Of a stretch of DNA of 64,000 bases, positions 7,220 through 49,086 are shown one piece after another. The stretch covers positions 46,190,001-46,254,000 of the forward strand of contig CM060733.1 of the NCBI GenBank assembly GCA_030704615.1, read 5' to 3'. Position 1 is the stretch's first letter, and the number at the start of each line of letters is the position of its first letter. Source of the DNA: Takakia lepidozioides. Lineage: Eukaryota; Plantae; Bryophyta. The notes beneath the pieces are model-generated. The model was not told where the DNA came from. It was given only the letters and a program-made list of their open reading frames with translations, and searched no databases. Position numbers and translations under genes: made by a program.

Positions 7220-8978
7220 GCAGATGCAGATGATTGCATGTAGGATGGCAGCGTCGAGTCAAAAGTTTGGCGGACATGAGACTGGCAGCATGGTTAGCAG
7301 TTCCAGCACTAGTGAGGAGGTGATGGCGTATGCATGGCTGGCCAACTGAAACATGCACTTGACGTAATGAATGAAACAAGCATTCAGGCAGACTACAGTA
7401 TCTATGTCTGCCTCTTGCAAGGTTGCATCCAAAGGAAAGATCTGGCACAGGGAAAGCAGGTGCGATACAATGCCTGAAGAGATTCGCTTACATGCACTAT
7501 GATGATGGCAGGATATGCCAAGCAGGGTCGTGCTGAGGAGGTTTTGAAGGTATATGAACAAATGGAACAGGGAGGGGTCGGGCCCGACAGGGTCACTTTC
7601 ATCTGCGTTCTTAAAGCTTGTGCGAGCCTAACTCTCCTGGAAAAGGCCAAAGAGGTCCATGCTAAAATCATTAAAGCTGGACATGCGACATACATAAATT
7701 TGGAGAACAGCTTTGTTGACATGTATGCCAAATGCGGGAGCATGAAGGATGCGTATCAGGTGTTCGACAGTATGGTGAAACGGAATGTGATCACATGGAA
7801 TGCAGTGCTTACAGGGTATGTTAAGCATGGGTGTGGCCGAGAGGCTTTGAAGATCTATGAACAAATGCAACAAGGAGTGATGCCTGACAGGGTCACATTC
7901 ATCTGCATTCTGCAGGCGTGTGCCAGCCTGGGAGCCCTGGAAAAGGGCAAACAGGTCCATGCCGATATTATCAAAGCTGGAATCAGTGGGTCATATGTAA
8001 ACTTAGACACTGCCCTTGTTGACATGTATTCCAAATGTGGGGGCATGAAGCATGTGCGCGGAGTGTTTGTTTTAAATGAGATGTCGTCTCATGGAATTCC
8101 TGATTTCTGGGTAAGCTCAGCATGCGCGTGGTATAGAAGCTTTGAAGATCTTTGAGCTAATGCAAAGAAAAGGGACGACTCCCGACAGGGTGACATCATC
8201 TGCATTCTCAATGCGTGTGCCAGCCTAGGAGATCTGGATAAGGGCAAAAGAGGTCCATGCTCTCCTAATTAAAGCCGGAACTGTAATTTTGGGAATACCC
8301 TTGTTCATATGTATGCCAAATGCGGGAGCATGAAGGATGCGCGTGAAGTGTTTGACAAAATGCCCAAACGAGATGTGGTCTCATGGAATGCCATGATGGC
8401 AGGATATGCTCAGCATGGGTGTGGTAGAAAAGCTTTGAAGATCTATGAGCAAATGCAACAGGAAGCCATGGTGTCGGATAGGTTTACATTCACTTGCATT
8501 CTCAATGCATGTGCCAGTCTAGGAATGCTTGGAAGGGGCAAAGAGGTTCATGCTGACATCATCAGAACTTTTATTCCATCAGAGATTATTTTGGAGACTG
8601 CTCTTGTAGAAATGTATGCCAAATGTGGGAGCATGAAGATTGCACATGAAGTGTTTGAGAATATGGCTAAACGAGATGTGAGACAGCTCCCTTTGTTCCT
8701 CCTCGAAATCATGCAGTACAAAACGTATGTCAGGCATGTACCCTGCATCCTTCATCTTCCTTTGCCACCACAGTGAAAAGCTGGCCATTGCTTTTGGGCT
8801 CATAAACACGTCCCCTGGGACACAAATCCGCATCATCAAGAACCTCCGTGTGTGCGGTAACTGCCACACAGCCACCAAGAGCATTTCGAAGATTGTTGGA
8901 CGAGCAGTTGTTGTGTGGGATGCCAACCGCTTTCATCACTTCCAAGATAGTGTTTGTTCTTGTGAGGATTACTGGTGA
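7220..8978 (+). pseudogene. PLS-class PPR-DYW gene, pseudogenised (frameshifts, E-domain deletion, internal inversion)
   Basis: PLS motifs in ORFs 7499-8155 and 8309-8776. DYW tail [12 protein letters not shown]...CGNCH...CSCEDYW* ends at 8978. Segment 8680-8760 is DYW coding sequence in reverse orientation. Confidence 0.9.
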
Positions 8979-10105
8979 AATCAGTTATAGGTATGTGTGC
9001 GGCAGTTGAAAGGAACAGTATTTTCTTACACAAGGACTAACATTGAAAGTACCGGTTTGAGTATTTCTCTAGCTGCTACCCAGGAAAATTGGGATGTGTA
9101 TGTTTTACAAATGTCTTAAGGCAGCTAGGGTTCTCCTTGTGTGCATGTGAAGAAAGAAGGCACCTAGGCAAGTCGAGGCATTTCGGAGCTCTTCAACGGT
9201 TGTTATGCATGTGGAACATCCAGTTAAAAGAGGAAAGATGTGAGGTGAAGAAACAGTCACAAGCTGTGCGGTTCCTGTTGCACCTCTGCAACTGGAAACG
9301 CACAGCTTGTCATTGTTTCTTCACTTCACGTCTTTGATGAAAGGGCCACTGTCAACCTGCCCTGCTTTGATGGTGCTTGTGGAGCAGCGAAATGGCAGAG
9401 GCTAACCACCCCTCACTTATCTTCCAGCTGCTCATGGGCAACCCTTTGATCAGGTATTGGACCAAAACTTGCTATGGACTGAGTTCCCACTCTGGATGGC
9501 CTGTGTGTGGCATCCAGAATTGTTTCCCCTGTGAGATATGAAGTCAATGTTGTAGGGGCTTATTCTGTGCACGATACCAGTGTCTTATGAAATGAGATCC
9601 GTTTTGCCGGAGGACGAGGGGGTTGCTACTGTCTGTCCTACACAGTAAGCAGCCATTGTGTTTGTAAGAGCACGACACTACAAAATGGCTGTGAATGAAA
9701 GATGTTTGGTATTCACCTCAGAGTCCTTCCACAACTCATGACCTGCATGGGAAGGTCTTGGTAATGTGGGGCGAGCTGGGCCTGCTGGTACAAACAGGTC
9801 TTTTTGTTGCTGAAAAGGAAGCAGGCAGTCACTGTCTGGGTACTCCAATGAAAGACCTGGTGACTCCTCAACCTCAACAACACCCAATCCTTCAAAAAAC
9901 ACTAGCTCCACAATTGTATGGACTACGGTAGAGACAGACTAAACACTCATTCACATTGTCAGGTGTAACCCCTTCCTGTATCATTTGATCATAGATGTCA
10001 AGGGCCTCCTTACCACACCAAGGGGGGGGGGGGGAGTGACTGAGCAGCAGCACATGCTTCTCTCTTCTGCTTTTCTCCTGTTATTGATTGAAAAACTTAA
10101 GAAAC

Positions 10106-11441
10106 TTAAGAAGGAAATGCTTCCTGCCTCTTCTCTCGGAGCAAAACCCTCGCCCTGGAAGCTAGCCATTGCCTAGCTCTCTTTGAACAGAACGCCACCT
10201 GAATAAGTTGACCTTCTGCTGAGGGAAATGTCAGTAGCGATATCTGTTCCCCACTCCTAGGGATACCTAGAGGACCTATCACTCTGTCATAGTGGTGGTT
10301 GCAATATGCCGATGACGTATACAAGTTCTCCAAACAAAAGCTCTCCCACTCTTGATCTGCCTCTTCGAACCATAACATAGAAAACACTTTATGTCCCGGT
10401 GGGGCCACCTCTCCATGAAGGATTGCCGAAGGGATTGAGAACACTATGACACATATAGTGTCGCCATGAAAAGAGCCCGCATGCACATGCAAAGGGTGTT
10501 CGTATGCAAACTGCAATGAATTACTCAAATAAAATGCTGGATCTCCCGAAAAATCATTCGCTTTGCGAGGTGGCTGAATCACATACAAACAAAAGCTTTC
10601 CCAAGATGCACTCCGGAATCCATGGTATAATGTTACCTCTCCCTCATATGCAGAAATTGGATCATAGAAATATGATGAAAATACGGAAAGGGCCTTCAAT
10701 CTAAACTCTTCGGATCTGTCCTTAATAGTGACTCAGTGATTAGGCTGTCCTTTAGTCGGGGTATGAAAAGCAGAAAGTTGGATATCAATGGTTTGCAAAG
10801 TTTGAAACAAATGAATGTTAGGATTCAAGGATGGACCTGAGGGGCAACGTCCTCCACCTCTGCCCCTTCTACCCCTTCGACCCCTCTACCCCTCCCACCT
10901 TGATTAAAACCACTACTTTGTGGCAATCCAGATGTAGACACATGCCCAACTGATCGGGTTTGACCCCTAGACACAATAATCCACCCTTCTTCATCTGCGT
11001 CTGTGTGGAGGAAATGGCTAACGAAGAGACTAAAATGACGCTCTCGTAAATCTCTAACCACTCTCAACCCCAATGCGGTGTAGCCACCATAGAGAAAAAA
11101 CTGAGCCCCCAATGCTGAGTCATGCATGGCAGCTAACTTGTCTAGGACATCTCTCACAACCTCTCTGAAAAATAGCGTTGTAAAAAACATGTCAAATCCT
11201 ATGAGCACAAACTAAAGGATAGTGCCGCATCATCTCGACGCATGTCATCCTTAGGAAAGTGCCATATAGTGTAAGACGGCGGAGGGTCTTTTAAAAGATT
11301 ATCATACTCTTGGGCAACCCCAAGAGAATGACAATCTATGTCTGTGTCTGGGCATGGACGTGACTGTAGCAAATCAGAGTGCCTGTTTTGAGTAGGAAAA
11401 CCAGCCCCCTGCAGTAGACCAACTTCCACGCGTTGCTCCAT
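10106..11441 (-). pseudogene. DUF3990-like ADP-ribosyltransferase-fold gene, copy 1 (C-terminal domain ORF 10106-10699 open; N-terminal part broken)
   Basis: TLYHG...NDFSGDPAFYLSNS...EWESFCLEN...YDRVIGP...QVAFCSKRA follows the DUF3990 order LYHG / DFG.GFY / W..F...N / YD.V.GP / Q.AF.S. Probable ATG at 11441 (MEQRVEVG) and a TATA-like tatatata at ~11890. Stops and frameshifts upstream of 10700. Confidence 0.65.
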
Positions 11442-11898
11442 GCCTACCGAAGAAGTCGGCTGAAGAAGCAAAGTATGGAATGACTTGAATTACCAAGCGG
11501 TAGCAACAAAAGATCGCAAAGATGAGTCTGCTGACCTCTAGGCGTTGGTCTTCTAAGTCAACCTGTTCACAAATATCTCATTTGTCTCAACTTACAATTC
11601 CACAATCTTCAAGAAGGATGCACAAGTGCAAACTCTAGTACTACACAGAAAATTATGACAACACTACACAGAAAAATCTAGGACAACCGACAGAGAACTC
11701 TAGCAGTACACAGAAAAATCTGTGACAACCGACAGAAAACTAGAGAGCACTCTAGAACATAAAAAGTGAGAAAGAGTGAGCGAGGGTTGAAATTTGACAA
11801 GAATAGAGATGAAAGATTAAATTGGTTACTGAAAGTTCTCCACCCAACAATAAGACCACAACATGTTGTACCACCCTCCGAGCTCTCCCTATATATAG

Positions 11899-12288
11899 GT
11901 TAAAAGCAGGTGTGGCGGATTCTGCCATTTTTTCGGCCTAATTCTCAGGCAGAATCGGCCACCCAGGGCAGAATCGGCAGGGATGGCCGATTACGCACAG
12001 AGGATGGCAGACTTACCACCGAGGCCCATGTCATCAGCCATCAACGCACCCTCCTACCCCTGAGGCTCGCCCGTTTATATCCTCTTGGGGGCTCTGAATC
12101 TGAGCAATCGATATGGGATAATCGAACCTCAATCATATTGCGCCACGTAGCGGCGAGAATCCGACACACCTGCTTTTAACGCCAGTGAACGGGCCGCGTT
12201 GGCCGACTCTGCCCTGTGCGCGGCCATAGGGCTCGCCCAAAGGCAGCTTACAGGGCAAAATCGGCCAAACACGGCCCCTTCTCTAGTA
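11899..12288. mobile_element. Transposon terminal region: 25-bp inverted repeat pair bounded by TTAA, plus a GC-rich hairpin ending ...CTCTAGTA
   Basis: 11899-11923 matches the reverse complement of 12156-12180 at 24/25. Imperfect hairpin 12189-12279. GGCAGAATCGGC-like motifs recur in both orientations. Confidence 0.55.
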
Positions 12289-13639
12289 CTCAAAGTCTAT
12301 TCTAGCAATAGCTGAGATAACTATAGCATAACTGCATGTTTAACTTGAGTTATCTCCAACTGCTATTCTAGTACTCTGACTTGAGTCATTAATAACTTGA
12401 GGCTTATCTATTGTAACTTTGACCGACACATCACACTAACTCTGAGTAACAATAACTTTACGGAGTTGATTTCCAGCTTGCTTGAGTTTACATGACGCAG
12501 AAAAGTGTGGGAAAAAAAACTGGGAAAAGAACGGAACCGAGATGCCCGAGAAAAATGAGAAGCAAACTGGGGTTGGTAATCTGGCACAGAGAGAGAAGAC
12601 TCCACCCAAAGCCGGCGTAAGTAAGAGCCACTTCACCTCACGGCTAGTGCCCCCTCTCGGGGGTGGGCCCTTTCTAAAAGATGTCCATAGGACACTAGGA
12701 GCCTAGAGCAGCAAGGTACCTTGGATACCAAGAGCCAGATAAGGGTTAGATTCGAGTTTAGGTTTGTTAGTAATTATGGGTGTGAAGGAGCGGAGTTAGT
12801 AATAATGGCTGTGAGGGAGCGGAGTTAGTAATAATGGCTATGAAGGAGCGGAGGGCGGTCAGGTGTATTGCTTTGAGGTGTATTGCTTTGAAACATTGAG
12901 AGGATAGGGAGTTTAAAGTTAGTGTGTAGTGCATCGATACTGGCGTTATGCATGCCGCCTTCAGTGCCAGCACTGATAACCGTCAAAGGACCATTGACCC
13001 AGCCTTTCCGCGGAGCGCAAGGATAAGTGGCGCATATTTTAGCCGTTTGTCTAGCATTGAGTTAGCGGGGTTTCAATCATGGCAGTATGTGAACTCAATA
13101 AAGTGGATGGTAATCTGGCACATCCGCAACTGTCACCTGGATATCAATAGGAGAATGTTGAATCCACCGGTGCAGTCATTCCACATAGCTCTAGGGGCCT
13201 TGTTTCCGAACCTAATAAATTTTAGTACAGGTTCTTTTGTTTGTGAGACCATCAACTATGAAAGACTGAAATGCTTCATGTATTTTGAATTTTTTTTCCC
13301 ACACATCTTTTTGGTGGAATCAGGCTGCCTGAAAACTTTATCCTTCTTCTACCCAGCACTCATCTGATGAACACTGGCATCTTTGCTGCGGGATACGGAA
13401 GAGCGCTCCATGATGTTTCCTGTATCTCCCTCCAGGGATGCAATTGGCCCTTGTAAACGAGCTACATGTTGTAGCCAATTACCTCATTTTTTGTGGTTTA
13501 CACGCTTACAGCAGTGTTGGTCGGATGTAGACCCATCCGGATATCAGTGCTCTTGGTGTTTTTGTTTTTTTGAGCATTCTCTCTGCACACATAAGCTGTG
13601 GTTCAGCAGCTGTGTAAGTCCAATGGAACCCAAAGCGAC

Positions 13640-16600
13640 TTGCATGAATGTTGGTGAAAGCTCACTACCACCCCTCCGTAAAGGAACTTGGTGCTGTCGG
13701 ATTTTCGGGCTACTTTGGAGCACGGAGCAGAGTTCATATGAGTTTTGTAAAGATCCTTCACGATAGTGGGACAGCCGCAATCGCAAGGTGCGGCTTTTTC
13801 TTAATGTACGCTGTGAGAAGAAGTTTGTCCTTCCTGCAAATGTGGGGTTCTTTTCTCTTCCTGTTAGTATCATGATCTGGTTAATTTTCCTTGGTGGTTG
13901 GTTACAAGGTACTTGGGAGGATCAGATAACAGAGATGAGGCGCAGCTTTGGAATGATTACTTTCCAGACCCCAGTCAAAAATGGTGGGGCAATCGAGGCA
14001 AAAAGATGAATGCATGTTGGATTACAGAGAGAAGCAGATGCAATTCAGGTATAGAACTAGTGTGATAAGTAGGGTTGGGGTGTTTGCTGGAAGAGCTCTA
14101 CCCTGTCATTGTCAGCTGCTAGCAGCGAGGCAAGGATGTACGCATGATTTGTGCAGAGGCAGGGATAGCTGAAGGAGCAGGGATAGAGTGTTGGGTCCAG
14201 ATTCAACCAAGAGGGCTGGATTGCAAACACAAGATTACTTACGATTCCCTGTGGATCAATAGCTACAAGAAACCTGCATGGGTAGATGGTCAACTGGAAG
14301 CAGCAGCGGCAGCAGCACAATTGATAAAACCAGGCACTGCTAATGAAGGCACCTTCTTCAACACATTTCAGCCTGTTCTTCCCTCTTATCAGACTCATGA
14401 ATTTTGCAAGTTAGCTCATTGGATGGATCTATGGGGGTTTGGAGTGTTTGACTTGTGGCAGCAGGAAAGTATCCAAAATCAAATAACAGAGATGAGGAGA
14501 AACTTTGGAATGAATCCTTTTCCGACCCCAGTCAATGGTGGGACAATCGAGCCAAAAAGGTGAATGCCTGTTGGATTACAGAGAGAAGCAGATGCAGTTC
14601 AGATATGACACTAGTGTGATAAGTAGGGTTGGGGTGTTTGCTGGAAGAAGGCCGGATTTCAAGCACAAGATTACCTATGATTCCCTGTGGATCAATAGCT
14701 ACAAGAAACCTGCATGGGTAGATGGTCAACTGGAAGCAGCGGCGGCAGTGGCACAGCTGATAAAATCAGGCACCTCCACCATGACCACACCTTCTGACAG
14801 AGGACCAAGAGAGGGAGTCCATAATGCCTCTTCTGGGACTTCTGGGCATGTGAAGATGCTTTGTGAGGCAGGCAGACTGACAGAGGCTCTACAGACCTTA
14901 AACCAAGGAGGCATTTCAGCAGATTCAGAGACGTATGTCTGTCTCTTGCATACGTGCATCAAGACGAAAGGCCTGGAAGCTGGAAAGCAGGTACATGCTC
15001 ACATTATCCATAGTGGATTCAAGCCAAACGTTTTTCTACACAACACCCTTGTCAACATGTATGTTAAGTGCGGGAGCATCATGGATGCTCACCAAGTGTT
15101 CAACAGAATGCCTCAACGATCTTTGATCACATGGAATATAATGTTGGCGCATGGGTGTGATACGAATGCTTTGGAGACCTATGACCAAATGATGCGGGAA
15201 GGGGTGAAGCCCAACCACATCACGTTTGTTTGCGTTTGCAATGCCTGTGCGAGCCTGGCAGCCCTGGAAAAGGGCAAAGAGGTCCATGGTGACATCGTCA
15301 AAGCTGGAATTGTACCAGATGTCATTCTGAACAGCACCCTTGTGGACATGTATGCCAAATGTGGGTGCATCGAGGATGCAAAGGCAGTGTTCGACAATAT
15401 GGCTGAATGAAATGTGGTATAGTGGAGCACGATGATCGCAGGATATGCACAGCAGGGGCGCGGGATGGAGGCTTTGGAGACCTATGAGCAAATGCTGCAG
15501 GAAGGGGTGAAGCCCAACCGCATCACATTTGTTTGCGTTTGCAGTGCGTGTGCCATCTGGTAGCTCTGGAAAAGGGCAAAGAGATCAATGGTGACATCGT
15601 CAAAGCTGGAATTGTATCTCATTCTGAACACTGCCCTGGTGGACATGTATGCCAATGTGGGAGCATGGAGGATGCAAAGGGAGTGTTCAACAATATGCCT
15701 GAACTAGATGTGGTGTCATGGAATGAAATGATTGCAGGATATGCCCAGCATGGTTGTCATAGGGAGGCCCTGCAACTATTTGAAGGAATGCAAAAGAAAG
15801 GCTTGAAGCCGAACAGTATCACCTTTACACGTGTTCTCTCTGCGTGCAGCCACACTGGCCTACTGGATGAAGGAAGATGCTACTTTGATTCCCTGAGTCA
15901 AGATAATGGTGTCTCTCCAACAGTAAAGCACTTTGGCTGCATGGTGGACCTTCTTGGACGTGCGGGGCGATTGGATGAGGCCGAGGACCTCATTAGAAAA
16001 ATGCCAATGAAGCCAAATGCTATGGTTTGGAGGGCCTTGCTCGGTGCCTGCAGAATCCATGGCAATGTGGAGATGGCTGAACGTGCGGCAACATTTATGC
16101 TCAAGTGGGATGAACAGGATGCTGCGACTTATGTGTTGCTATCAAACATCTATGCTGCAGCTGGCAGGTGGGATGATAGTGCAAAGGTGAGAAAAATGAT
16201 GAAGGTGAGAGGGGTTAGAAAGGAGCCCGGTTACTGCTGCATTGAGGTTGGCAAGAAGGTGCACACCATTGTGGTAGATGACAAATTGCATCCCAAAATG
16301 AAGGAAATCCATGCTGAGCTGAGAAGATTGTCTGGGCAGATGAAGGAGGCGGGGTATGTGCCTGACACACGCTTTGTATTGCATGATGTTGGGGAGGAGC
16401 AAAAGGAGTTTTCTCTTTGCCACCACAGTGAGAAGCTGGCCATTGCTTTTGGGCTGATCAGCACACCCCATAGGACGCCTCTCCGTCTCATCAAGAATCT
16501 TCGGGTGTGTGGTGACTGCCACACCTCCACCAAATTCATCGCAAAGATTGTTGGTCGAGCAATTGTTGTACGGGACGCTAACCGCTTTCACCACTTTGAA

Positions 16601-16800
16601 GATGGATTTTGTTCTTGTGGGGATTACTGGTGAAAAGATGTTTTTTCTGGAAAGGTGCAAGTGTCTTGCTTCATTCATTGAACTGTGTAGCTACTCAGTC
16701 AATCCACCATTTCCTGAGAATATTGCATTTCCTGTAGCAAATCCACAGGAAATGATAGTGGGGTCTACCCAGCATAGGTGGGATGTCAGCCCATAATTAT
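13640..16800 (+). repeat. Left arm of a large inverted segmental duplication (partner ~39255-43270)
   Basis: Upstream blocks (e.g. KILH..GT.AIARCGF; EGTFFNTFQPVLPSYQ), the PPR gene and 3' flank 16634-16800 all match the reverse complement of the partner. There is also an internal tandem duplication, ~13920-14340 vs ~14470-14770. Confidence 0.85.
14535..16633 (+). pseudogene. PLS-class PPR-DYW gene with premature stops and frameshifts; the P2-L2-S2-E-DYW portion is still an open frame
   Basis: ORF 14535-15410 ends at TGA (CGA in the paralog), with another TAG near 15420 and frameshifts at ~15540-15660. ORF to 16633 keeps the PG box, HSEKLA, CGDCH and terminal DYW. Confidence 0.9.
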
Positions 16801-39254: not shown

Positions 39255-42200
39255 GCAATTGTGGGCTGACCTCCCACCTACGCTGGGTAGACCCCACTAC
39301 CATTTCTTGAGGATATGCCACAGGAAATGCCCTCAACAGTACATCATGGTCAATATTCTAAGGAAATGGTGGATGGAGTGAGTAGCTACACAGATCAAAG
39401 ACTGAAGCAAGACACTCAACCCTTTCCAGAAAAACATCATTTTACCAGTAATCCCAACAATCGCTCGACCAACAAGCATTGAGATGAACTTGGTGGAGGT
39501 GTGGCAGTCACCACACACCCAAAGATTCTTGATGACACGGCGTCCTAGGGGCCGTGCTAATCAGCCCAAAACCAATGGCCAGATTCTCACTGTGGTGGCC
39601 AAGAGAAAATTCCTTTTGCTCCTCCCCCACATTATGCGTGTGTCAGGCACATACCCTGCATCCTTCATCTGCCCAGACAACCTTCTCAGCTCAGCATGGA
39701 CTTCCTGAAACTTGGGATGCAACTTGTCATCTACAATAAAACTGTGCACCCTGTTGCCGACCTCAATGCAGCAGCGACCTGGATCCTTTCCACCCCTCTG
39801 AGCTCCATCATTTTTCTCACCTTCGCACCATCATCCCACCTGCCAGCTGCAGCATAGATGTTTGATAGCAACACATAAGTCGCAGCGTCCTGTTCATCCC
39901 ATTTGAGAATAGATGTTGCCGCACGTTCAGCCATCTCCACATTGCAATGGATTCTGCAGGCACCGAGCAAGGCCCTCCAAACCATAGCATCTGGTTTCAT
40001 TGGCATTTTGTTAATGAAGTCCTCTGCCTCATCCAATAGCCCCGCACGGCCAAGAAGGTCCACCATGGAGACAAAGTGCTGCACTGCTGGAGTGATGCCA
40101 TGATCTTGACTCAGGGCGTCGAAGTAGTATTTGCCTTCATCCACGAGGCCAGCATGGCTACAGGCAGAGAGAACACACAGAAAAGTGATACTGTCCAGCT
40201 TCAAGCCTTCCATTTGCATCTCTTCCAATAGTTGCAGGGCCTCCATATCATAACCATGCTGGGCATATCCTGCGATCATTGAGTTCCAGGACACCACATC
40301 TCGTTTGGCCATATGGTTGAACACTCCCTTTGCATCCTCGATGCTCCCACATTTGGAATACATGTCCACGAGGGTATTGTTCAGAATGACATCTGGTACA
40401 ATCCCAGCTTTGATGATGTCACCATGGACCTCTTTGCCCTTTTCCAGGGCTGCCAGGCTCGCACACGAATTGCAAACGCAAATAAATGTGACTTGGTCGG
40501 GCTTGACCCCTTCCTGCATCATTTGCTGGTAGGTCTCCAAAGCCTCCATCCTGCGCCCCTGCTGTGCATATCCTGCAATCATCACATTCCACGACACCAC
40601 ATCTCGTTCAGCCATATTGTCGAACACTACCTTTGCATCCTCAATGCAGCCACATTTGGCATACATGTCCACAAGGGTACTGTTCAGATTGACATCTGGT
40701 ACAATTCCAGCCTTGACGATGTGACCATGGACCTCTTTACCCTTCTCCAGGGCTGCCAGGCTTGCACACGCATTGCAGACGGAAACAAACGTAATGCAGT
40801 TGGGCTTCACTCTTTCCTGCATCATTTGCTCATAGGACTTCAAAGCCTCCATCCCACACCCATGCTGTGCATATCCTGCGATCATTGAGTTCCACGACAC
40901 CGCGTCTCGTAAGGCCATGTGGTTGAACACTCCCTTTGCATCTTCAATGCTCCCACATTTGGCATACATGTCCACAAGGGTATTGTTCAGAATGACATCT
41001 GGTATAATTCCAGCTTTGATCATGTCACCATGGACCTCTCTGCCCTTTTCCAGGGCTGCCAAGCTCGCACATGCATTGCAAACGCAAACGAACGTGATGT
41101 GGTTGGGCCTCACTCCTTCCTGCATCATTTGCTCATAGGTCTTCAAAGCCTCCATCCCACACCCATGCTGCACATATCCTGCAATCATAGCACTCCAGGA
41201 CACCACATTCCGTTCAGCCATATGGTTGAACACTTCCTTTGCATTCTTGAAGCAGCCACATTTGGCATACATGTCCACAAGGGTATTGTTCAGAATGACA
41301 TCTGGTACAATACCAGCTTTGACAATGTCACCATGGACCTCTTTGCCCTTTTCCAGGGCTGCAAGGCTCGCACACGCATTGCAAATGCAAACAAATGTGA
41401 CATGGTCAGGCTTCACCCCTTCCCTCGCCATTTGTTCATAAATCTCCAAAGCCTCCATCCCACACCCATGCTGGGCATATCCTGTGATCATTGCGTTCCA
41501 TGACACCACATCTCGTTCGGCCATATTGTCAAACACTCCCTTTGCATCCATGATGCTCCCGCCTTTGGCATACATTTTCATAAGCGCAGTGTTCAGAATG
41601 ACATCTGGTACAATTCCAGCTTTGATGATGTCACGATGGACCTCTTTGCCTTTTTCCAGGGCTCCCAGGCTCGCGCACGCATTGCTAACGCAAACGAACG
41701 TGATGTGGTTGGGCTTCACACCTCCCCCTATCATTTGCTCATATGTCTCCAAGGCATTCTTACCACATCCATGCATGTTAAATCCCGCCATCATAATATT
41801 CCACGAGATCAAACTGCGTTGAGGCATTTTGTTGAACACTTTGTGAGCATCAAGGATGCTCCCGCACTTGACATACATGTTCACAAGGGTGTTGTGTAGA
41901 AAAACGTTTGGTTTGAATCCACTTTGGATAATGTGAGCATGCACCTGCTTTCCAGATTCCAGGCCTTTCATATTGATGCACTTACGCAAGAGACACACAT
42001 AAGTATCTGAATCTGCTGAAATGCCTCCTTGGTTTAAAGTCTGTAAAGTGTCTTTGAGTTGCCCTGCCTCACATAGCATCCTCACATGCCCAGAAGTGCC
42101 AGAAGTCGCATTGTGGACTCCCTCTCTTGGTCCTCTTTTGGAAGCTGTGGTCATGGTTGAGGTGCCTGATTTTATCAACTGTGCCGCCGCCACTGCTTCC

Positions 42201-46104: not shown

Positions 46105-46530
46105 ATGTCAGCATACCCCCAAACACAGAGTTTCCTCTTGACACTGAGGACAATGAAAATGCGTGCGCACCATACAAACCATATACATGCGCCTCCTTGT
46201 TGAGTGCAAGATCTGACGCACCACCCAATGGTACTTGGGATGTGTAAATGGACTTCATTTCCAAAGTGGTCCAATATCCTCTGTCAATTGTCATTGGATG
46301 GTCATGGCCAACTTAAATTGCAAGTGGCTCATGGGTTCCTTCCCCACCTGCCTCATGTGAGATGAATGAAGAATCCAGATATTCACCATAGATGTATCAA
46401 GTAAGAAGAAGTACATACGGTGCCACCACTTGTGTGTCTTCATCTACACGCTATAAACACATATCAAATTGATCTTGCACATCTACACCTCGCATATAAC
46501 TTTAATGGTATTGCAAGTGCATGGGAGAGA
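46105..46530 (-). mobile_element. piggyBac-like transposase C-terminal fragment (degraded)
   Basis: Minus-strand translation SYMRGVDVQDQ...KTHKWWHRMYFFLLDTSMVNIWIL...SHLQFKLA, then RRRMYMVC...HCPQC...LCLGVC. This is the third catalytic Asp region (GVD..DQ) plus the cysteine-rich domain. Confidence 0.8.
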
Positions 46531-46869: not shown

Positions 46870-47728
46870 TTCTACTTTTCAATTGTTTCAAACGTTGCAA
46901 ACCATTGATATCCACCTTTCTGCTTTTCATACCCCGACTAAAGGACAATCTAATCATCGCCGAGTCACTATTAGGGACAGATCCGAAGAATTTAGGTTGA
47001 ACGCCCTTTCCGTATTTTCATCATATTCGCAGTAGAGAAAGGGCGTTGGGCTGCTCAGAGGATTCGCGCGCGTGTTTAGGCGTTTGTTGTTTTTCGTGTG
47101 TTTAGGTTGCGAGGTTCTCGATGTGTTCGGTGTAGGTGCGATTGGGCATTTGATGAGAGAGAAAGTGTGGTTTGTATCTAATCTGGACAGTTCTAACTCG
47201 CGCCTTCTGACACTGTAGATGACGAACATGTATTGTGGTTGCTTCTACAAAACGTATGGTGTTTTTCCTTCTGAAATGAATGACCTTTCGCCTTGCAAAT
47301 CTCACTCGGCCCTGGTGTGCCTCTGCGGGTGTCAGAGGACATGTCCATTTGGTATACTACGAAGAATAACAAGGTGCAAATTGCGAAGGGTAGGACTTGT
47401 TACCTTGCCCAGTATGATCCTGTCACTGAGATCGGGGTCGTCTTTCTTGGTACTTCATCTGGATTCTTAGGGGTGAATGCAAATAGATTCGTTCCTGTTT
47501 ATGGTGGGGCCGTAGACCAGCATGATCTTCCTTTGTCGGTGGATCCGAGTTCTACATATGAGGGAGAGATAACATTATATCACGGATGTCGGAGTGCATT
47601 TTGAGAAAGCTTTTGTCTGTATTGGATTGAGCGACTGAATTTTCAAGAGATCTAGCATTTAATTTGAGCAATTCGTTGCAGTTTGCATACAAACACTCTT
47701 TGCATGTGCGTGCGGACTCATTTCATTT
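46870..47728 (+). pseudogene. DUF3990-like ADP-ribosyltransferase-fold gene, copy 2 (different deletion derivative)
   Basis: 46870-47030 and 47540-47728 match the reverse complement of ~10670-10815 and ~10465-10665 (YEGEITLYHG.RSA). It carries ~510 bp absent from copy 1, but lacks the C-terminal half. Confidence 0.75.
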
Positions 47729-47746
47729 CATTCTGAGCCTGCAAGT

Positions 47747-48860
47747 TTGAATGACAAGCTGCCTCTTGAATCTGAAGGTACTGGTACCTTGACATCCCCT
47801 CTTACCAGTAACTTGCAGTTGAGAGAGAGAGATGATCCTTGCAGTCCTAGTCCTAAGAAGGGAAAATGTGTTGTTGTGGAGGACTCCGAACCTGGTTTGA
47901 GGCCTTCATTGAATTTCCAGAATGTTGGGCTCTCTCATGTGCCTGCAAAGAGAGTACATGCAGCTAGCACATCTGCTCGAAGGTATGAATCGCGTCTGAT
48001 CAGACCTGCCATGCCTGTTAGAGTCAAACAATATGTGCTTTTTGGTGAGTTAGAAGAATGGGTGGATCCAGCCTCAGATTGGTATTATGGGGAGATTGTT
48101 GAGACTTGGGTTCATGTGCCTTCACGCCAGAAAATGGTAGAGGCTGACTTTGGCCCTTTGCTTGGTTTGAGGACACTTGACTTTGGGCAGTGTGATTTGC
48201 TTGGGCTGCCCACTGGTGCTTTGTTTGGGGAGGGCACGGCTGGAAAGAGGCAAGGGCCATTTGAGCAAAATAGTAGAGGGGATTTGTGCTCACAACACTT
48301 GATGGATGAAATTGACATTCCCGAGTTTGATGGTGATGAGGACTATACTGATGATCCTACAGCCTATGAGGGGGACACCGATGATGAAGACAAATGGAAT
48401 TGGCATGGGGAAATTGATGATGATACTATGTTGGGTGAGTTGGGAATCTATGATGAGGTTGTGGATTTGGATACCCTTCAGTTTAGAGATCTCTTCAAAA
48501 ACATCAATTGGCAGTCAACTGACACTTTGGTTGGAAACCCAGGTCAATTTGTTGGTCCTGTTCCTGGCCCAACTTTGCCAAGCACTTTTAGGAGCCACTT
48601 GCTCTCTTAGTTCGACCTTTTCTTCCCACGACCGAATCTGGTCCGTATAAACAACTCCCACAAAACCTTAGGAGATGTAAAGAAGTTATCAATGACCAAT
48701 GTGTGATCCACATGGAAGAATGCCAAGTATTCACATGGTTGAGCGCTCTCATTTACGCCGCAGATGCATTGTTTGTAGTCAGAGGTGTCGCACATTTTGT
48801 GGCCCTTGTGCCAATCGTTTTATGTGCCAAACAACTGTTTTCGGAGAGTTCATTGTAGGC
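47747..48860 (+). mobile_element. Internally deleted piggyBac-like transposase (N-terminal region plus C-terminal cysteine-rich domain)
   Basis: Acidic N-terminal tract, then FVGPVPGPT...LS*FDLFFP (piggyBac-type N-terminal motif), joined to RRRCIVCSQRCRTFCGPCANRFMC..NCFRRVH. The catalytic core is missing. Confidence 0.65.
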
Positions 48861-49086
48861 ATCGATAGGGTTCAATATAGATATCAATTTTGGTAGTGGC
48901 TACTGGCTACAACAACTCTTGACATTAGTGGACTTTGATGGTGTTTTAGTTTTTGGATATTGACATGTAGTTGTGGGGGGATGACAAGGTGGTGGGGTAA
49001 TAGAGACATGTGCTTAGTTTTGCGCCTTGGCATGGCATGGGGCAGGGGGCTGACTTATTGACATGACAGTTTGAAAATGCTACTGC

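Follow-up and report, generated by a model that had tools for sequence, protein, structure and literature searches.

A broken copy of a eukaryotic gene with a predicted DUF3990-type ADP-ribosyltransferase domain in Takakia lepidozioides

The question raised by this locus of Takakia lepidozioides is what kind of gene lies there, whether it still works and how it came to be where it is. The window (the whole stretch of 64,000 nucleotides of contig CM060733.1 that we analyzed) contains a 197-amino acid (aa) open frame that a sequence-only reading had taken for a DUF3990-like gene of the ADP-ribosyltransferase (ART) fold, present twice in the window and carried by DNA transposons, possibly as a toxin/addiction module. 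The frame is indeed present at 10106–10699 on the minus strand (its TTG start is mechanical), and all the motifs listed for it occur in the same order: LYHG (residues 24–27), DF..FYLS (49–59), W..F...N (118–125), YDRVIGP (137–143) and QVAFCS (167–172). The gene to which it belongs is longer than the frame and is broken.

A three-part gene in four pieces

The 197-aa frame is the C-terminal domain of an intronless gene of ~445 codons that runs from 11441 to 10106 on the minus strand (copy 1). A profile of full-length homologs, searched against the six-frame translation of the window, recovered copy 1 as four collinear minus-strand pieces from ~11363 down to 10109; the pieces were searched separately, not as a joined reading. 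The outer coordinate proposed earlier for the gene (11441) holds as well, with a full-length profile match and an ATG at 11439–11441. The pieces are as follows:

11202–11441, minus strand: piece 1, starting at the ATG (11439–11441); first part of the N-terminal helical domain, with the 'PPPSYTIW' block; ends at a TAG (11199–11201)
10828–11211, minus strand: piece 2, in a different frame; remainder of the helical N-terminal domain, acidic stretch with a conserved tryptophan and start of the Gly/Arg-rich linker; ends at a TGA (10825–10827)
10736–10885, minus strand: piece 3, in the third frame; RGG-rich linker and conserved 'F.TP.KG' block; ends at an in-frame TGA (10733–10735)
10106–10732, minus strand: piece 4, in the frame of piece 3; predicted DUF3990-type ART-fold domain, comprising the 197-aa frame and 11 upstream codons; stop codon TAA (10106–10108)

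Two frameshifts and one in-frame stop break copy 1 ahead of the 197-aa frame. Pieces 1 and 2 are separated by the first frameshift, within ~11190–11223, and pieces 2 and 3 by the second, within ~10870–10885. Piece 1 gives a weak but collinear match to positions 18–66 of the full-length family profile. Piece 2 matches positions 78–191 (E 1.4e-9 in the whole six-frame window, 2.3e-12 against the four pieces alone) and can be aligned to the N-terminal domains of 15 homologs, and piece 3 matches positions 183–232 (E 1e-7 and 1.6e-10, respectively). Piece 4, which carries His26, Tyr57 and Gln167, matches positions 236–442 with an E value of 1.7e-63. At the site of the in-frame TGA, the second copy of the gene in the window (copy 2, described below) reads through. 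Copy 1 is a pseudogene and yields no three-part protein as it stands. The sequence-only reading had missed the breakage.

All three lesions are reproduced without difference in the short-read contigs of one DNA run, and over piece 2 the window and these contigs are identical, with zero differences. The run is probably the assembly's own sample, so an assembly or consensus error in the GGA-rich stretch of low complexity could be shared by both. DNA read depth across copy 1 is 24–33, which is the single-copy level (at 90% likeness) outside 10665–10806. Copy 1 is intron-free and has ordinary plant genes as neighbors on both sides. We also considered that the pseudogene had been inserted in a pentatricopeptide repeat (PPR) gene and rejected this, as only one isolated 28-codon PPR motif adjoins it. 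A methyltransferase-like gene lies ~8 kb from copy 1, and the analysis of copy 1 turned up no link to it.

Could the plant nevertheless make an active ART domain, the lesions being assembly errors or being bypassed by an alternative start or splicing? The ART frame runs through 208 codons with no stop and has kept 22 of 24 highly conserved positions, the His, Tyr and Gln among them, and one of the lesions falls in the GGA-rich stretch, which is prone to indel errors. Contigs matching 10994–11210 and 10242–10490 also occur in runs of uncertain kind; one of 217 bases is identical to 10994–11210 and comes from a run guessed to be RNA, so there may be weak transcription over this part of the gene. 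However, three separate lesions are all identical in the short-read contigs and the in-frame stop is located in unique sequence. Furthermore, the head of the ART frame has no ATG (the first methionine is residue 108), a glycine at position 40 that is invariant in 30 of 30 homologs has been replaced, and no contig from the two runs guessed to be RNA covers 10106–10732. With this evidence against it, we regard a functional locus as very improbable. The near-intact state of the ART domain implies either that the lesions are recent or that the C-terminal part is still in some use. Being a pseudogene, the locus in its present state cannot serve as a toxin or an addiction module. The broader proposal that DNA transposons in this region carry microbial-type modification enzymes therefore loses the support that it drew from a locus now dead.

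A divergent eukaryotic branch of DUF3990

A Pfam scan of the 197-aa frame returned DUF3990 (PF13151) as the only real match (20.9 bits, E 3.2e-4, profile positions 2–103 of 152), a score below the gathering threshold of 32.2 bits for this model. Searched independently, 17 of 31 members of the window's family match DUF3990 (E≤0.01, best 1.1e-7). Because the score of the frame falls short of the threshold while its relatives match, we place the window domain in a divergent branch of DUF3990 and not among model-level members. Alignment of the eukaryotic family to eight bacterial DUF3990 proteins, three of which scored 157–164 bits on PF13151, gave an hhalign probability of 98.6% (E 7.5e-16, 145 columns, query columns 25–188). 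By tblastn, the bacterial proteins and the family share 24–33% identity over 130–170 residues. The scans of the 197-aa frame against NCBIfam, PHROGs and PDB sequences produced nothing useful, and the family profile retrieved from PDB sequences only weak Tpt1 matches at the HGT strand (E 0.25).

The sequence-only reading had staked its case on an ART fold and on the conservation of the His and Tyr residues among homologs, and both were found. The AlphaFold model of the ART domain has a pLDDT of 88.5 and a pTM of 0.86, and ART-fold neighbors fill the top rows of the structure searches. In VIA-align, the first ~40 rows are all ART-fold proteins (Z 8.8 down to 4.6), headed by ParT (8.8), RhsP2 (7.6), a RES-type toxin (7.5), PARP1 (7.3) and diphtheria-toxin homologs (~7), followed by DarT and Tpt1; Z scores of 7–9 are middling on the tool's own scale. 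The best rows in Foldseek were PARP2, a RES toxin and ParT (best E 2.8e-3). A shape search of the ESM Atlas led to a cluster of bacterial DUF3990 proteins (TM 0.69/0.70, 164 residues, rmsd 2.8) and to an RHS-DUF3990 cluster (TM 0.61). Among 30 homologs, His26 is conserved in 97%, Tyr57 in 93% and Gln167 in 97%, and the window copy has kept all three. These residues align with H5, Y30 and Q143, which are invariant in the eight bacterial DUF3990 proteins. By alignment, the putative H-Y-Q signature is thus common to the eukaryotic family and bacterial DUF3990. On the strength of these comparisons and of the model, we assign the domain as a true but divergent DUF3990 with a predicted ART fold.

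Searched with phmmer against 1.84 billion representative proteins, the 197-aa frame had 77 matches at E≤1e-3 and 43 at E≤1e-10 (best 1.1e-41), well outside what chance would give. At least 18 relatives of 400 aa or longer are among the matches listed. The intact relatives (~400–500 aa) consist of a helical N-terminal domain of ~110 aa, an acidic stretch, a disordered linker rich in Arg and Gly (RGG-like) and closed by a conserved 'F.TPPKG' block, and the ART domain; eight full-length relatives of 441–500 aa each have the N-terminal domain, the RGG linker and the ART domain. Every motif listed for the 197-aa frame corresponds to a conserved block in both the eukaryotic family and bacterial DUF3990. 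All homologs with a named organism are fungal: Puccinia striiformis, P. coronata, Mycena metata, M. leptocephala and the chytrids Gaertneriomyces, Phlyctochytrium and Geranomyces. The matching Atlas clusters are assigned to Mucoromycota, Cnidaria and Ascomycota, and UniRef labels the Puccinia homologs 'PARP catalytic domain-containing protein'. DUF3990 thus includes a eukaryotic branch of considerable size, which sits below the Pfam threshold and in which the three-part architecture is fixed. The earlier label 'microbial-type' is misleading about the nearest relatives, which are eukaryotic three-part proteins of 400–500 aa, the named ones fungal.

The gene likewise has no introns in Puccinia, in one metagenome contig or in another eukaryote, and some Mycena genes have introns. 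The genes next to the homologs are ordinary ones in Mycena, in Puccinia and in a compact fungus-like contig. The Gaertneriomyces gene adjoins genes for a D5-type primase, an SprT-like protein and a ResIII helicase, a set that is virus-like or mobile-element-like. The family may thus behave as conflict genes do, a reading to which we give little weight: its distribution is patchy (fungi, other eukaryotes and a moss-like plant), most members lack introns, duplication and inactivation have recurred, and one chytrid copy stands beside virus-like replication genes.

Other searches added little to the family. A word-index protein search with the 197-aa frame gave no match; with the full-length alignment it gave only four proteins and was swamped by low-complexity RGG words, and with the ART domain of one metagenomic relative it gave only the self match. 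A metagenome scan with the family alignment found bacterial DUF3990 loci only. Some of its contigs come from human-gut metagenomes and bear bacterial DUF3791-DUF3990 cassettes. A literature search found no paper on the eukaryotic DUF3990 branch beyond a clan list of members.

The N-terminal domain is modeled as all-helical (pLDDT 87.7). It had no Pfam match in eight homologs, no Atlas feature match and no structural relative, with a best Foldseek E of 1.9 and a best VIA-align Z of 4.9. Bromodomain-like helical rows (Z ~4) were not considered meaningful. The possibility that the domain is a fused version of DUF3791, the bacterial partner protein, was rejected (hhalign 0.7%).

Origin of the two copies

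As the sequence-only reading had noticed, the gene occurs twice in the window. The second copy is truncated, broken and more decayed than the first:

46878–47027, plus strand: left part of copy 2; end of the linker and start of the predicted ART domain, 91% identical to 10669–10815 (blastn, alignment), profile positions 208–249; 5' side cut off
47028–47541, plus strand: interruption of ~515 bases, with no counterpart in copy 1 or in any of the protein homologs
47542–47740, plus strand: right part of copy 2; predicted ART domain from the 'YEGEITLYHG' to the 'HPLHV' block, 80% identical to 10466–10663, with an internal stop, a 13-base gap and a change of frame; 3' side cut off

The fragment at 46.9–47.7 kb is probably an older remnant of the family of copy 1. 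The two copies can be aligned only over 10466–10815, which is 350 bases of gene body, and their flanks differ. We rejected an intron or a MITE as the source of the ~515-base interruption, which has no GT-AG ends, terminal repeats or target site duplication (TSD).

The copies may derive from segmental duplication, retroposition or capture. In one reading, they could have been spread as cargo of a DNA transposon (e.g., piggyBac), with the ART-like gene acting as a toxin/addiction or modification module. Near copy 2, piggyBac-like blocks were seen by eye at 46291–46443 ('KWW...LLD', minus strand) and 48610–48795 ('DNFFTS', minus strand), and an acidic 287-aa frame (47747–48610, plus strand) directly follows the copy. 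A TTAA-flanked inverted-repeat element of 282 bases (11899–12180) also lies ~460 bases upstream of copy 1, and the family is multi-copy and decaying both in the Takakia window and in another eukaryote. Yet copy 1 is not enclosed by inverted repeats, even at a seed of 9 and a length of 14; between 8900 and 12600, the scan found only a local palindrome (9234–9335) and the upstream element at 11899–12180. The copies have no common flank, and copy 2 breaks off at either end without a TTAA or terminal repeat at the break. The Pfam search revealed no transposase in ten neighboring frames, and there is none near copy 1. Single-copy read depth at 90% likeness and the ordinary neighbors of the homologs in Mycena, Puccinia and the fungus-like contig also speak against a transposon, as do the three copies in another eukaryote, the flanks of which have no nucleotide similarity to each other. 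The claim of transposon cargo is not sustained by these results, and we consider it improbable. That both copies are processed retrocopies, made by a LINE from the mRNA of an intact parent elsewhere in the genome, would agree with the intronless gene and with the truncation of copy 2 on its 5' side. However, copy 1 has no A-run after its stop codon (10106), the general repeat scan showed no direct repeat flanking this copy, and copy 2 lacks its 3' part too. Furthermore, the absence of introns is no sign of retroposition, because the family is also intronless in the metagenome contig, Puccinia and the other eukaryote. Retroposition thus appears unlikely.

Somewhat more speaks for a foreign origin, in which the plant lineage acquired the family horizontally, either from a fungus itself or from a mobile element (a virus, for instance) of fungi or protists, and the gene has decayed since its arrival. 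All the organism-named homologs are fungal, the Atlas clusters point to Mucoromycota, Cnidaria and Ascomycota, the copies seen in the plant are all broken, and the Gaertneriomyces gene stands beside its virus-like or mobile-element-like set. On the other hand, the window sequence clusters in the tree with its nearest relatives, sequences of transcriptome or metagenome assemblies that could be from plants, and not with the named fungal ones, and the tree has no strongly supported grouping of the window sequence with any fungus. The two contigs that bear the closest relatives have nothing in common with the window outside the gene, and a scan of a viral contig collection with the clade motifs found no relative. 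The identity of the window frame to its best phmmer match is only 43–49%, so no recent donor is visible. A foreign origin is possible but, in our view, doubtful.

We consider it probable that copy 1 derives from a low-copy gene family of Takakia, as a full-length and intronless copy that was inactivated recently. Intact members of the family would be three-part DUF3990-type ART proteins; 'gene family of Takakia' here refers to broken copies, of which the window has two. The locus itself is a dead gene that does nothing for the plant, and the family is of greater interest. For annotation, the family profile and the map of breaks allow further remnants in Takakia to be read as one pseudogene family and not as separate findings of a 'foreign toxin'. 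More speculatively, and with little confidence, the H-Y-Q ARTs could be an undescribed, conflict-gene-like lineage in which the intact proteins are RNA- or DNA-targeting ADP-ribosylating enzymes, defensive or selfish, that move between distant hosts.

Predicted activity and comparison with known systems

By analogy with other ARTs, the intact protein would bind NAD+ through the His at the end of strand 1 and the Tyr on strand 2. Gln167, at the head of the penultimate core strand, would act where PARPs and diphtheria toxin have their catalytic Glu. The protein could then be a mono-ADP-ribosyltransferase (or an NAD+ glycohydrolase) of the H-Y-[EDQ] class. Its RGG linker suggests recruitment to a nucleic acid such as RNA, and this may be the substrate.

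Among the closest described counterparts are uncharacterized proteins of the same family as the window copy: POW03227.1 of Puccinia striiformis (UniRef100_A0A2S4V124), B0H16DRAFT_1589640 of Mycena metata and KAI9004201.1 of Gaertneriomyces semiglobifer. The Puccinia and Mycena proteins have the three-part architecture of the family and ART domains that are 25–40% identical to that of the window. The annotated Gaertneriomyces product (220 aa) is the C-terminal part only; the N-terminal domain is encoded further upstream without a change of frame, separated from it by an in-frame stop or a short intron. Unlike the broken window copy, the fungal homologs are intact annotated genes.

Bacterial DUF3990 (PF13151), which is either a stand-alone protein of ~160 aa or the C-terminal toxin domain of Rhs proteins, is end to end the same domain as that of the family. 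For example, it forms the C-terminal domain of the type VI secretion system protein Rhs5 of Serratia (PMC4524185). Pfam places DUF3990 in its ART clan, eukaryotic members included (PMC7955679). The bacterial and eukaryotic proteins have in common the blocks LYHG, FYL[ST], QA.E, EW..F...N, H.YDIVIGP and Q..F..T..A. The eukaryotic family differs in its additional helical N-terminal domain, its RGG linker and its longer loops (HPLH.H and LHGE..PP). A small DUF3791 gene lies directly upstream of bacterial DUF3990 in all 11 loci examined, whereas the window locus has no DUF3791 relative.

PARP1/2/3/4, tankyrase and the homologs of diphtheria toxin and exotoxin A belong to the same fold class (VIA-align Z 5.9–7.3). 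As in the family, the H-Y-E ARTs have the His on strand 1 and the Tyr on strand 2. In contrast to PARPs, the family has a Gln where the catalytic Glu would be, lacks their helical regulatory domain and gives no match to PARP models in Pfam. For these reasons, poly-ADP-ribosylation would not be expected.

The best solved structural neighbors of the window domain are ParT (6d0h, Z 8.8), the C-terminal domain of RhsP2 (7rt7, 7.6) and the RES-family 8gug (7.5), 9r35 (7.0) and 6fkg (6.4). Between 120 and 138 residues align across the domain at 8–11% identity, a likeness of fold alone that shows no function. These toxins differ from the window locus in that the latter has no immunity or antitoxin partner. 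RhsP2 provides a precedent for a nucleic-acid target, as it is reported to ADP-ribosylate the 2'-OH groups of structured RNA (PMC12340436). For VopU of Vibrio parahaemolyticus, an H-Y-Q triad (H7/Y39/Q141) is reported to be required for mono-ADP-ribosylation (bioRxiv 10.64898/2026.05.07.723553). The spacing of this triad is similar to that of H26/Y57/Q167; the comparison covers the three residues and their spacing. The VopU paper makes no mention of DUF3990. Given the H-Y-Q signature, the RGG linker and the RhsP2 and VopU precedents, the intact fungal proteins are candidates for enzymes that ADP-ribosylate nucleic acids or proteins in eukaryotes.

A broken ART gene on the minus strand

The DUF3990-like ADP-ribosyltransferase (ART) gene remnant at 11441–10106 (minus strand; copy 1) is a young pseudogene belonging to a three-part DUF3990-type ART branch that is eukaryotic, rich in fungal members, marked by an H-Y-Q signature and so far undescribed. 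Its C-terminal domain is a 197-codon minus-strand frame (the ART frame, 10106–10699) carrying, as the sequence-only reading had described, the motifs LYHG, DF..FYLS, W..F...N, YDRVIGP and QVAFCS in that order. A Pfam scan returned DUF3990 as the sole meaningful match (E = 3.2e-4; 20.9 bits, under the 32.2-bit cut-off), and no match was found in NCBIfam, PHROGs, PDB sequences or a word-index protein search. In a language-model search of the ESM Atlas, the frame adjoined eukaryotic clusters with DUF3990 in one third of their members. As the family scans did not settle what the protein is, we ran an exhaustive HMMER search, which retrieved 77 proteins at E <= 1e-3, of which 43 reached E <= 1e-10; the best E-value was 1.1e-41, and identities ranged from 35 to 49%. 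Thus, the frame is a real coding remnant and not a chance one.

Most of the long HMMER matches had the ART domain at the C-terminus of a protein of 400–500 amino acids. A full-length family profile built from the 18 matches of at least 400 amino acids aligned to the minus strand in four collinear pieces, each searched separately.

Pieces of copy 1 matched by the family profile (E-values against the whole six-frame window)
11202–11489, minus strand: piece 1, profile 18–66; weak match, contains the PPxSYTIW block
10828–11211, minus strand: piece 2, profile 78–191; E = 1.4e-9
10736–10885, minus strand: piece 3, profile 183–232; E = 1e-7
10109–10732, minus strand: piece 4, profile 236–442; E = 1.7e-63

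The pieces are spread over three reading frames. The first frameshift falls within ~11190–11223, with a TAG (11199–11201) closing the first frame, and the second within ~10870–10885, in the GGA-rich linker. There is also an in-frame TGA at 10733–10735, a place where a second, fragmentary copy (copy 2; 46878–47740, plus strand) is open. The ATG proposed earlier as the gene start is present (11439–11441). The collinear pieces and the lesions therefore identify copy 1 as a complete, intronless but broken copy, i.e., a pseudogene. Logan contigs of a DNA run (X1), probably from the same sample as the assembly, match 10024–10775, 10748–11068 and 11082–11700 with zero differences. Decay of the ART domain is slight: 22 of the 24 columns with at least 85% agreement among 30 homologs are kept, the exceptions being position 40, where Val replaces an otherwise invariant Gly, and position 49, where Asp replaces Glu. 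Two runs guessed to be RNA had no contigs over the ART frame; one of them contained a 217-base contig identical to 10994–11210. A 249-base contig on 10242–10490 came from one run of unstated kind.

Intact relatives of the gene

Full-length members begin with an N-terminal block of ~110 amino acids. An acidic region containing a conserved Trp comes next, then a linker rich in Gly and Arg whose end is F.TPPKG, and finally the ART domain. The N-domain was modeled as all-helical (pLDDT 87.7) and had no Pfam match, Atlas neighbor or structural relative. The named homologs are all from fungi: Puccinia striiformis, P. coronata, Mycena metata, M. leptocephala and the chytrids Gaertneriomyces, Phlyctochytrium and Geranomyces. 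P. striiformis has several paralog clusters, some named 'PARP catalytic domain-containing protein' by UniRef. The Gaertneriomyces semiglobifer homolog (GCA_025558075.1; contig L012, 1–10663) is longer than annotated, with the N-domain (9416–9826) and ART domain (9830–10660) in one frame and a stop or short intron between them. With a eukaryotic family and exclusively fungal named homologs, the description of the gene as microbial-type does not hold for the copy 1 locus.

In the family tree, copy 1 clusters with six sequences (support 90/90, under the tool's star threshold), which derive from Logan contigs of transcriptome-like character and from two metagenome assemblies. One of the six (P0003) is an intact, intronless gene for a 472-amino-acid protein on a eukaryotic metagenome contig. 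Furthermore, in the ENA assembly ERZ25073694 one eukaryote has at least three intronless copies that decayed separately (L001, L092 and L093), on long, gene-poor contigs (280–600 kb, GC 37–41%) whose flanks around the copies had no nucleotide similarity to each other. Hence, this plant is not the only genome in which several copies have died. Contigs of 1.6–1.9 kb containing this ART-family gene and nothing else turned up repeatedly, in several runs from two studies, suggesting expression of intact members somewhere.

Genomic setting and origin of the copies

The window is plant nuclear DNA with a GC content of ~45% throughout and no compositional island at the copy 1 locus. Other frames encode a PA-domain protein, a GTPase and a KUP/HAK-type potassium transporter, and there are three PPR loci.

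PPR genes or gene remnants, with E/DYW-type C-terminal ends detected by Pfam or through similarity
7328–8980: PPR gene or gene remnant
14535–16633: PPR gene or gene remnant
39456–42193: PPR gene or gene remnant

The interval from the broken PPR gene to copy 1 contains a near-perfect palindrome (9234–9335; 49-nt arms, 88% complementary, 4-nt spacing). Directly 3' of the copy 1 stop, a run of 13 C precedes a single 28-codon PPR motif (9934–10017, minus strand), which has a read depth of ~3000 versus 24 nearby because the motif is common to many PPR genes. A 29-nt unit is repeated three times in tandem at 12766–12853 (90% identical). Local duplications (13921–14094/14478–14648 and 14209–14337/14645–14773; 86–92% identical) involve the 5' end of the PPR gene at 14535 and the sequence immediately before it, suggesting that its promoter or first-exon region was duplicated.

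Copy 2, the only further copy found in the window by a six-frame profile search, is broken off at both sides; it contains a stop codon and a gap of 13 bases, and its frame changes. Its left part (46878–47027) is 91% identical to 10669–10815 and its right part (47542–47726) 80% identical to 10466–10663. The ~515 bases separating them are missing from copy 1 and all protein homologs and show neither intron ends nor terminal repeats nor a duplication. Between the copies (10466–10815 versus 46878–47726), identity drops from 91% over the linker and domain start to 80% over the next 200 bases, reflecting either uneven decay or a gene-conversion tract.

The sequence-only reading had taken the gene for live cargo of DNA transposons, a view that fails for the copy 1 locus, where the gene is broken, without bracketing repeats and without a common flank. 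A repeat scan found no inverted repeats bracketing copy 1, and the sole nearby element, a 282-base TTAA-flanked inverted-repeat unit (11899–12180), is wholly upstream of it. The flanks of the two copies have nothing in common, and DNA depth over copy 1 is single-copy, with one extra copy over 10665–10806 only. Copy 2 does lie, by eye, among piggyBac-like blocks (46291–46443, 48610–48795 and an acidic frame at 47747–48610), but Pfam detected no transposase in ten frames around it. The family has a patchy distribution and has given rise to pseudogenes repeatedly. In Gaertneriomyces, the genes immediately upstream of the homolog encode D5_N primase, SprT-like and ResIII/Herpes_ori_bp helicase domains, a combination characteristic of large DNA viruses or Polinton-like elements; against this, the neighbors in Mycena, Puccinia and a compact fungus-like contig are ordinary genes. 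On balance, carriage of the ART gene by a transposon is very improbable. Retroposition as the source of the copies is less remote but still unlikely, and a foreign origin of the family is doubtful, if slightly more plausible; both are compatible with the main reading of copy 1 as a pseudogene.

The 11899–12180 element is bounded by terminal inverted repeats of 25 nt that are 96% complementary and both begin at TTAA, and it contains inner short inverted repeats; its terminal repeat has no other occurrence in the window. It resembles a MITE that uses target sites of the piggyBac type and lies ~460 bases upstream of the copy 1 ATG, followed by a TATATATAG box at ~11887–11895. The piggyBac-like pieces seen by eye around copy 2 (46291–46443, minus; 47747–48610, plus; 48610–48896, both strands), none matched by Pfam, include 'KWW..LLD', 'DNFFTS', an acidic N-terminal-like 287-amino-acid frame and a Cys-rich tail. 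Because the two blocks at 48.6–48.9 kb overlap each other on opposite strands, they cannot both be genuine.

ART fold, H-Y-Q signature and bacterial DUF3990

The copy 1 locus is ordinary; the three-part ART family is of modest interest for biochemical work. A structure predicted from an alignment of the ART frame with the ART domains of 30 homologs (A1) had a pLDDT of 88.5 and a pTM of 0.86. The top Foldseek rows against the PDB were PARP2, an RES toxin and ParT (E = 3e-3 to 6e-3). Independently, VIA-align ranked ParT first (Z 8.8, 138 residues), then the RhsP2 toxin domain (7.6), an RES-type toxin (7.5) and PARP1 (7.3), followed by diphtheria-toxin homologs (~7), exotoxin A, DarT and Tpt1. 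A single Z of 7–9 is middling by VIA-align's own calibration, and the weight is carried by the uniformity of the list: down to Z 4.6, essentially all rows are ART folds. An Atlas shape search matched a bacterial DUF3990 cluster (TM 0.69/0.70, 164 residues, rmsd 2.8), an RHS-DUF3990 cluster (TM 0.61) and a 452-amino-acid Ascomycota cluster (0.71).

Pfam DUF3990 was matched independently by 17 of the 31 aligned domains (best, 1.1e-7). A metagenome scan gave bacterial relatives, eight of which (~160 amino acids) were aligned (A5); the three scanned scored 157–164 bits against PF13151. Alignment of A1 to A5 with hhalign covered the entire domain (98.6% probability, E = 7.5e-16, 145 columns), with corresponding blocks LYHG, FYL, QA.E, EW..F...N, H.YDIVIGP and Q..F.T..A. 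H5, Y30 and Q143 are invariant in the eight bacterial proteins, and the eukaryotic set keeps H26 in 97%, Y57 in 93% and Q167 in 97%. The ART fold and the conserved His and Tyr proposed from the sequence are thus both borne out. In the model, strand 1 ends with His26, strand 2 contains Tyr57, and Gln167 is at the head of the strand that precedes the final helix and strand. The catalytic Glu of PARPs and diphtheria toxin sits at the position that, from the order of secondary-structure elements, Gln167 would occupy.

In all 11 bacterial metagenome loci examined (L013, L014, L015, L016, L018, L019, L024, L031, L048, L063 and L079), a small DUF3791 gene (74–87 amino acids) precedes the DUF3990 gene on the same strand and abuts or overlaps it, and in L013 and L014 an extra 72-amino-acid frame follows. 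This conserved cassette resembles a toxin-antitoxin or toxin-immunity pair. The eukaryotic N-domain is unrelated to DUF3791. DUF3990 belongs to the Pfam ART clan, where it is listed among the families with eukaryotic members (PMC7955679), and forms the C-terminal domain of the Serratia Rhs5 protein (PMC4524185). The H-Y-Q spacing of the ART domain resembles that of VopU, whose H-Y-Q triad is reported to be required for mono-ADP-ribosylation (bioRxiv 10.64898/2026.05.07.723553).
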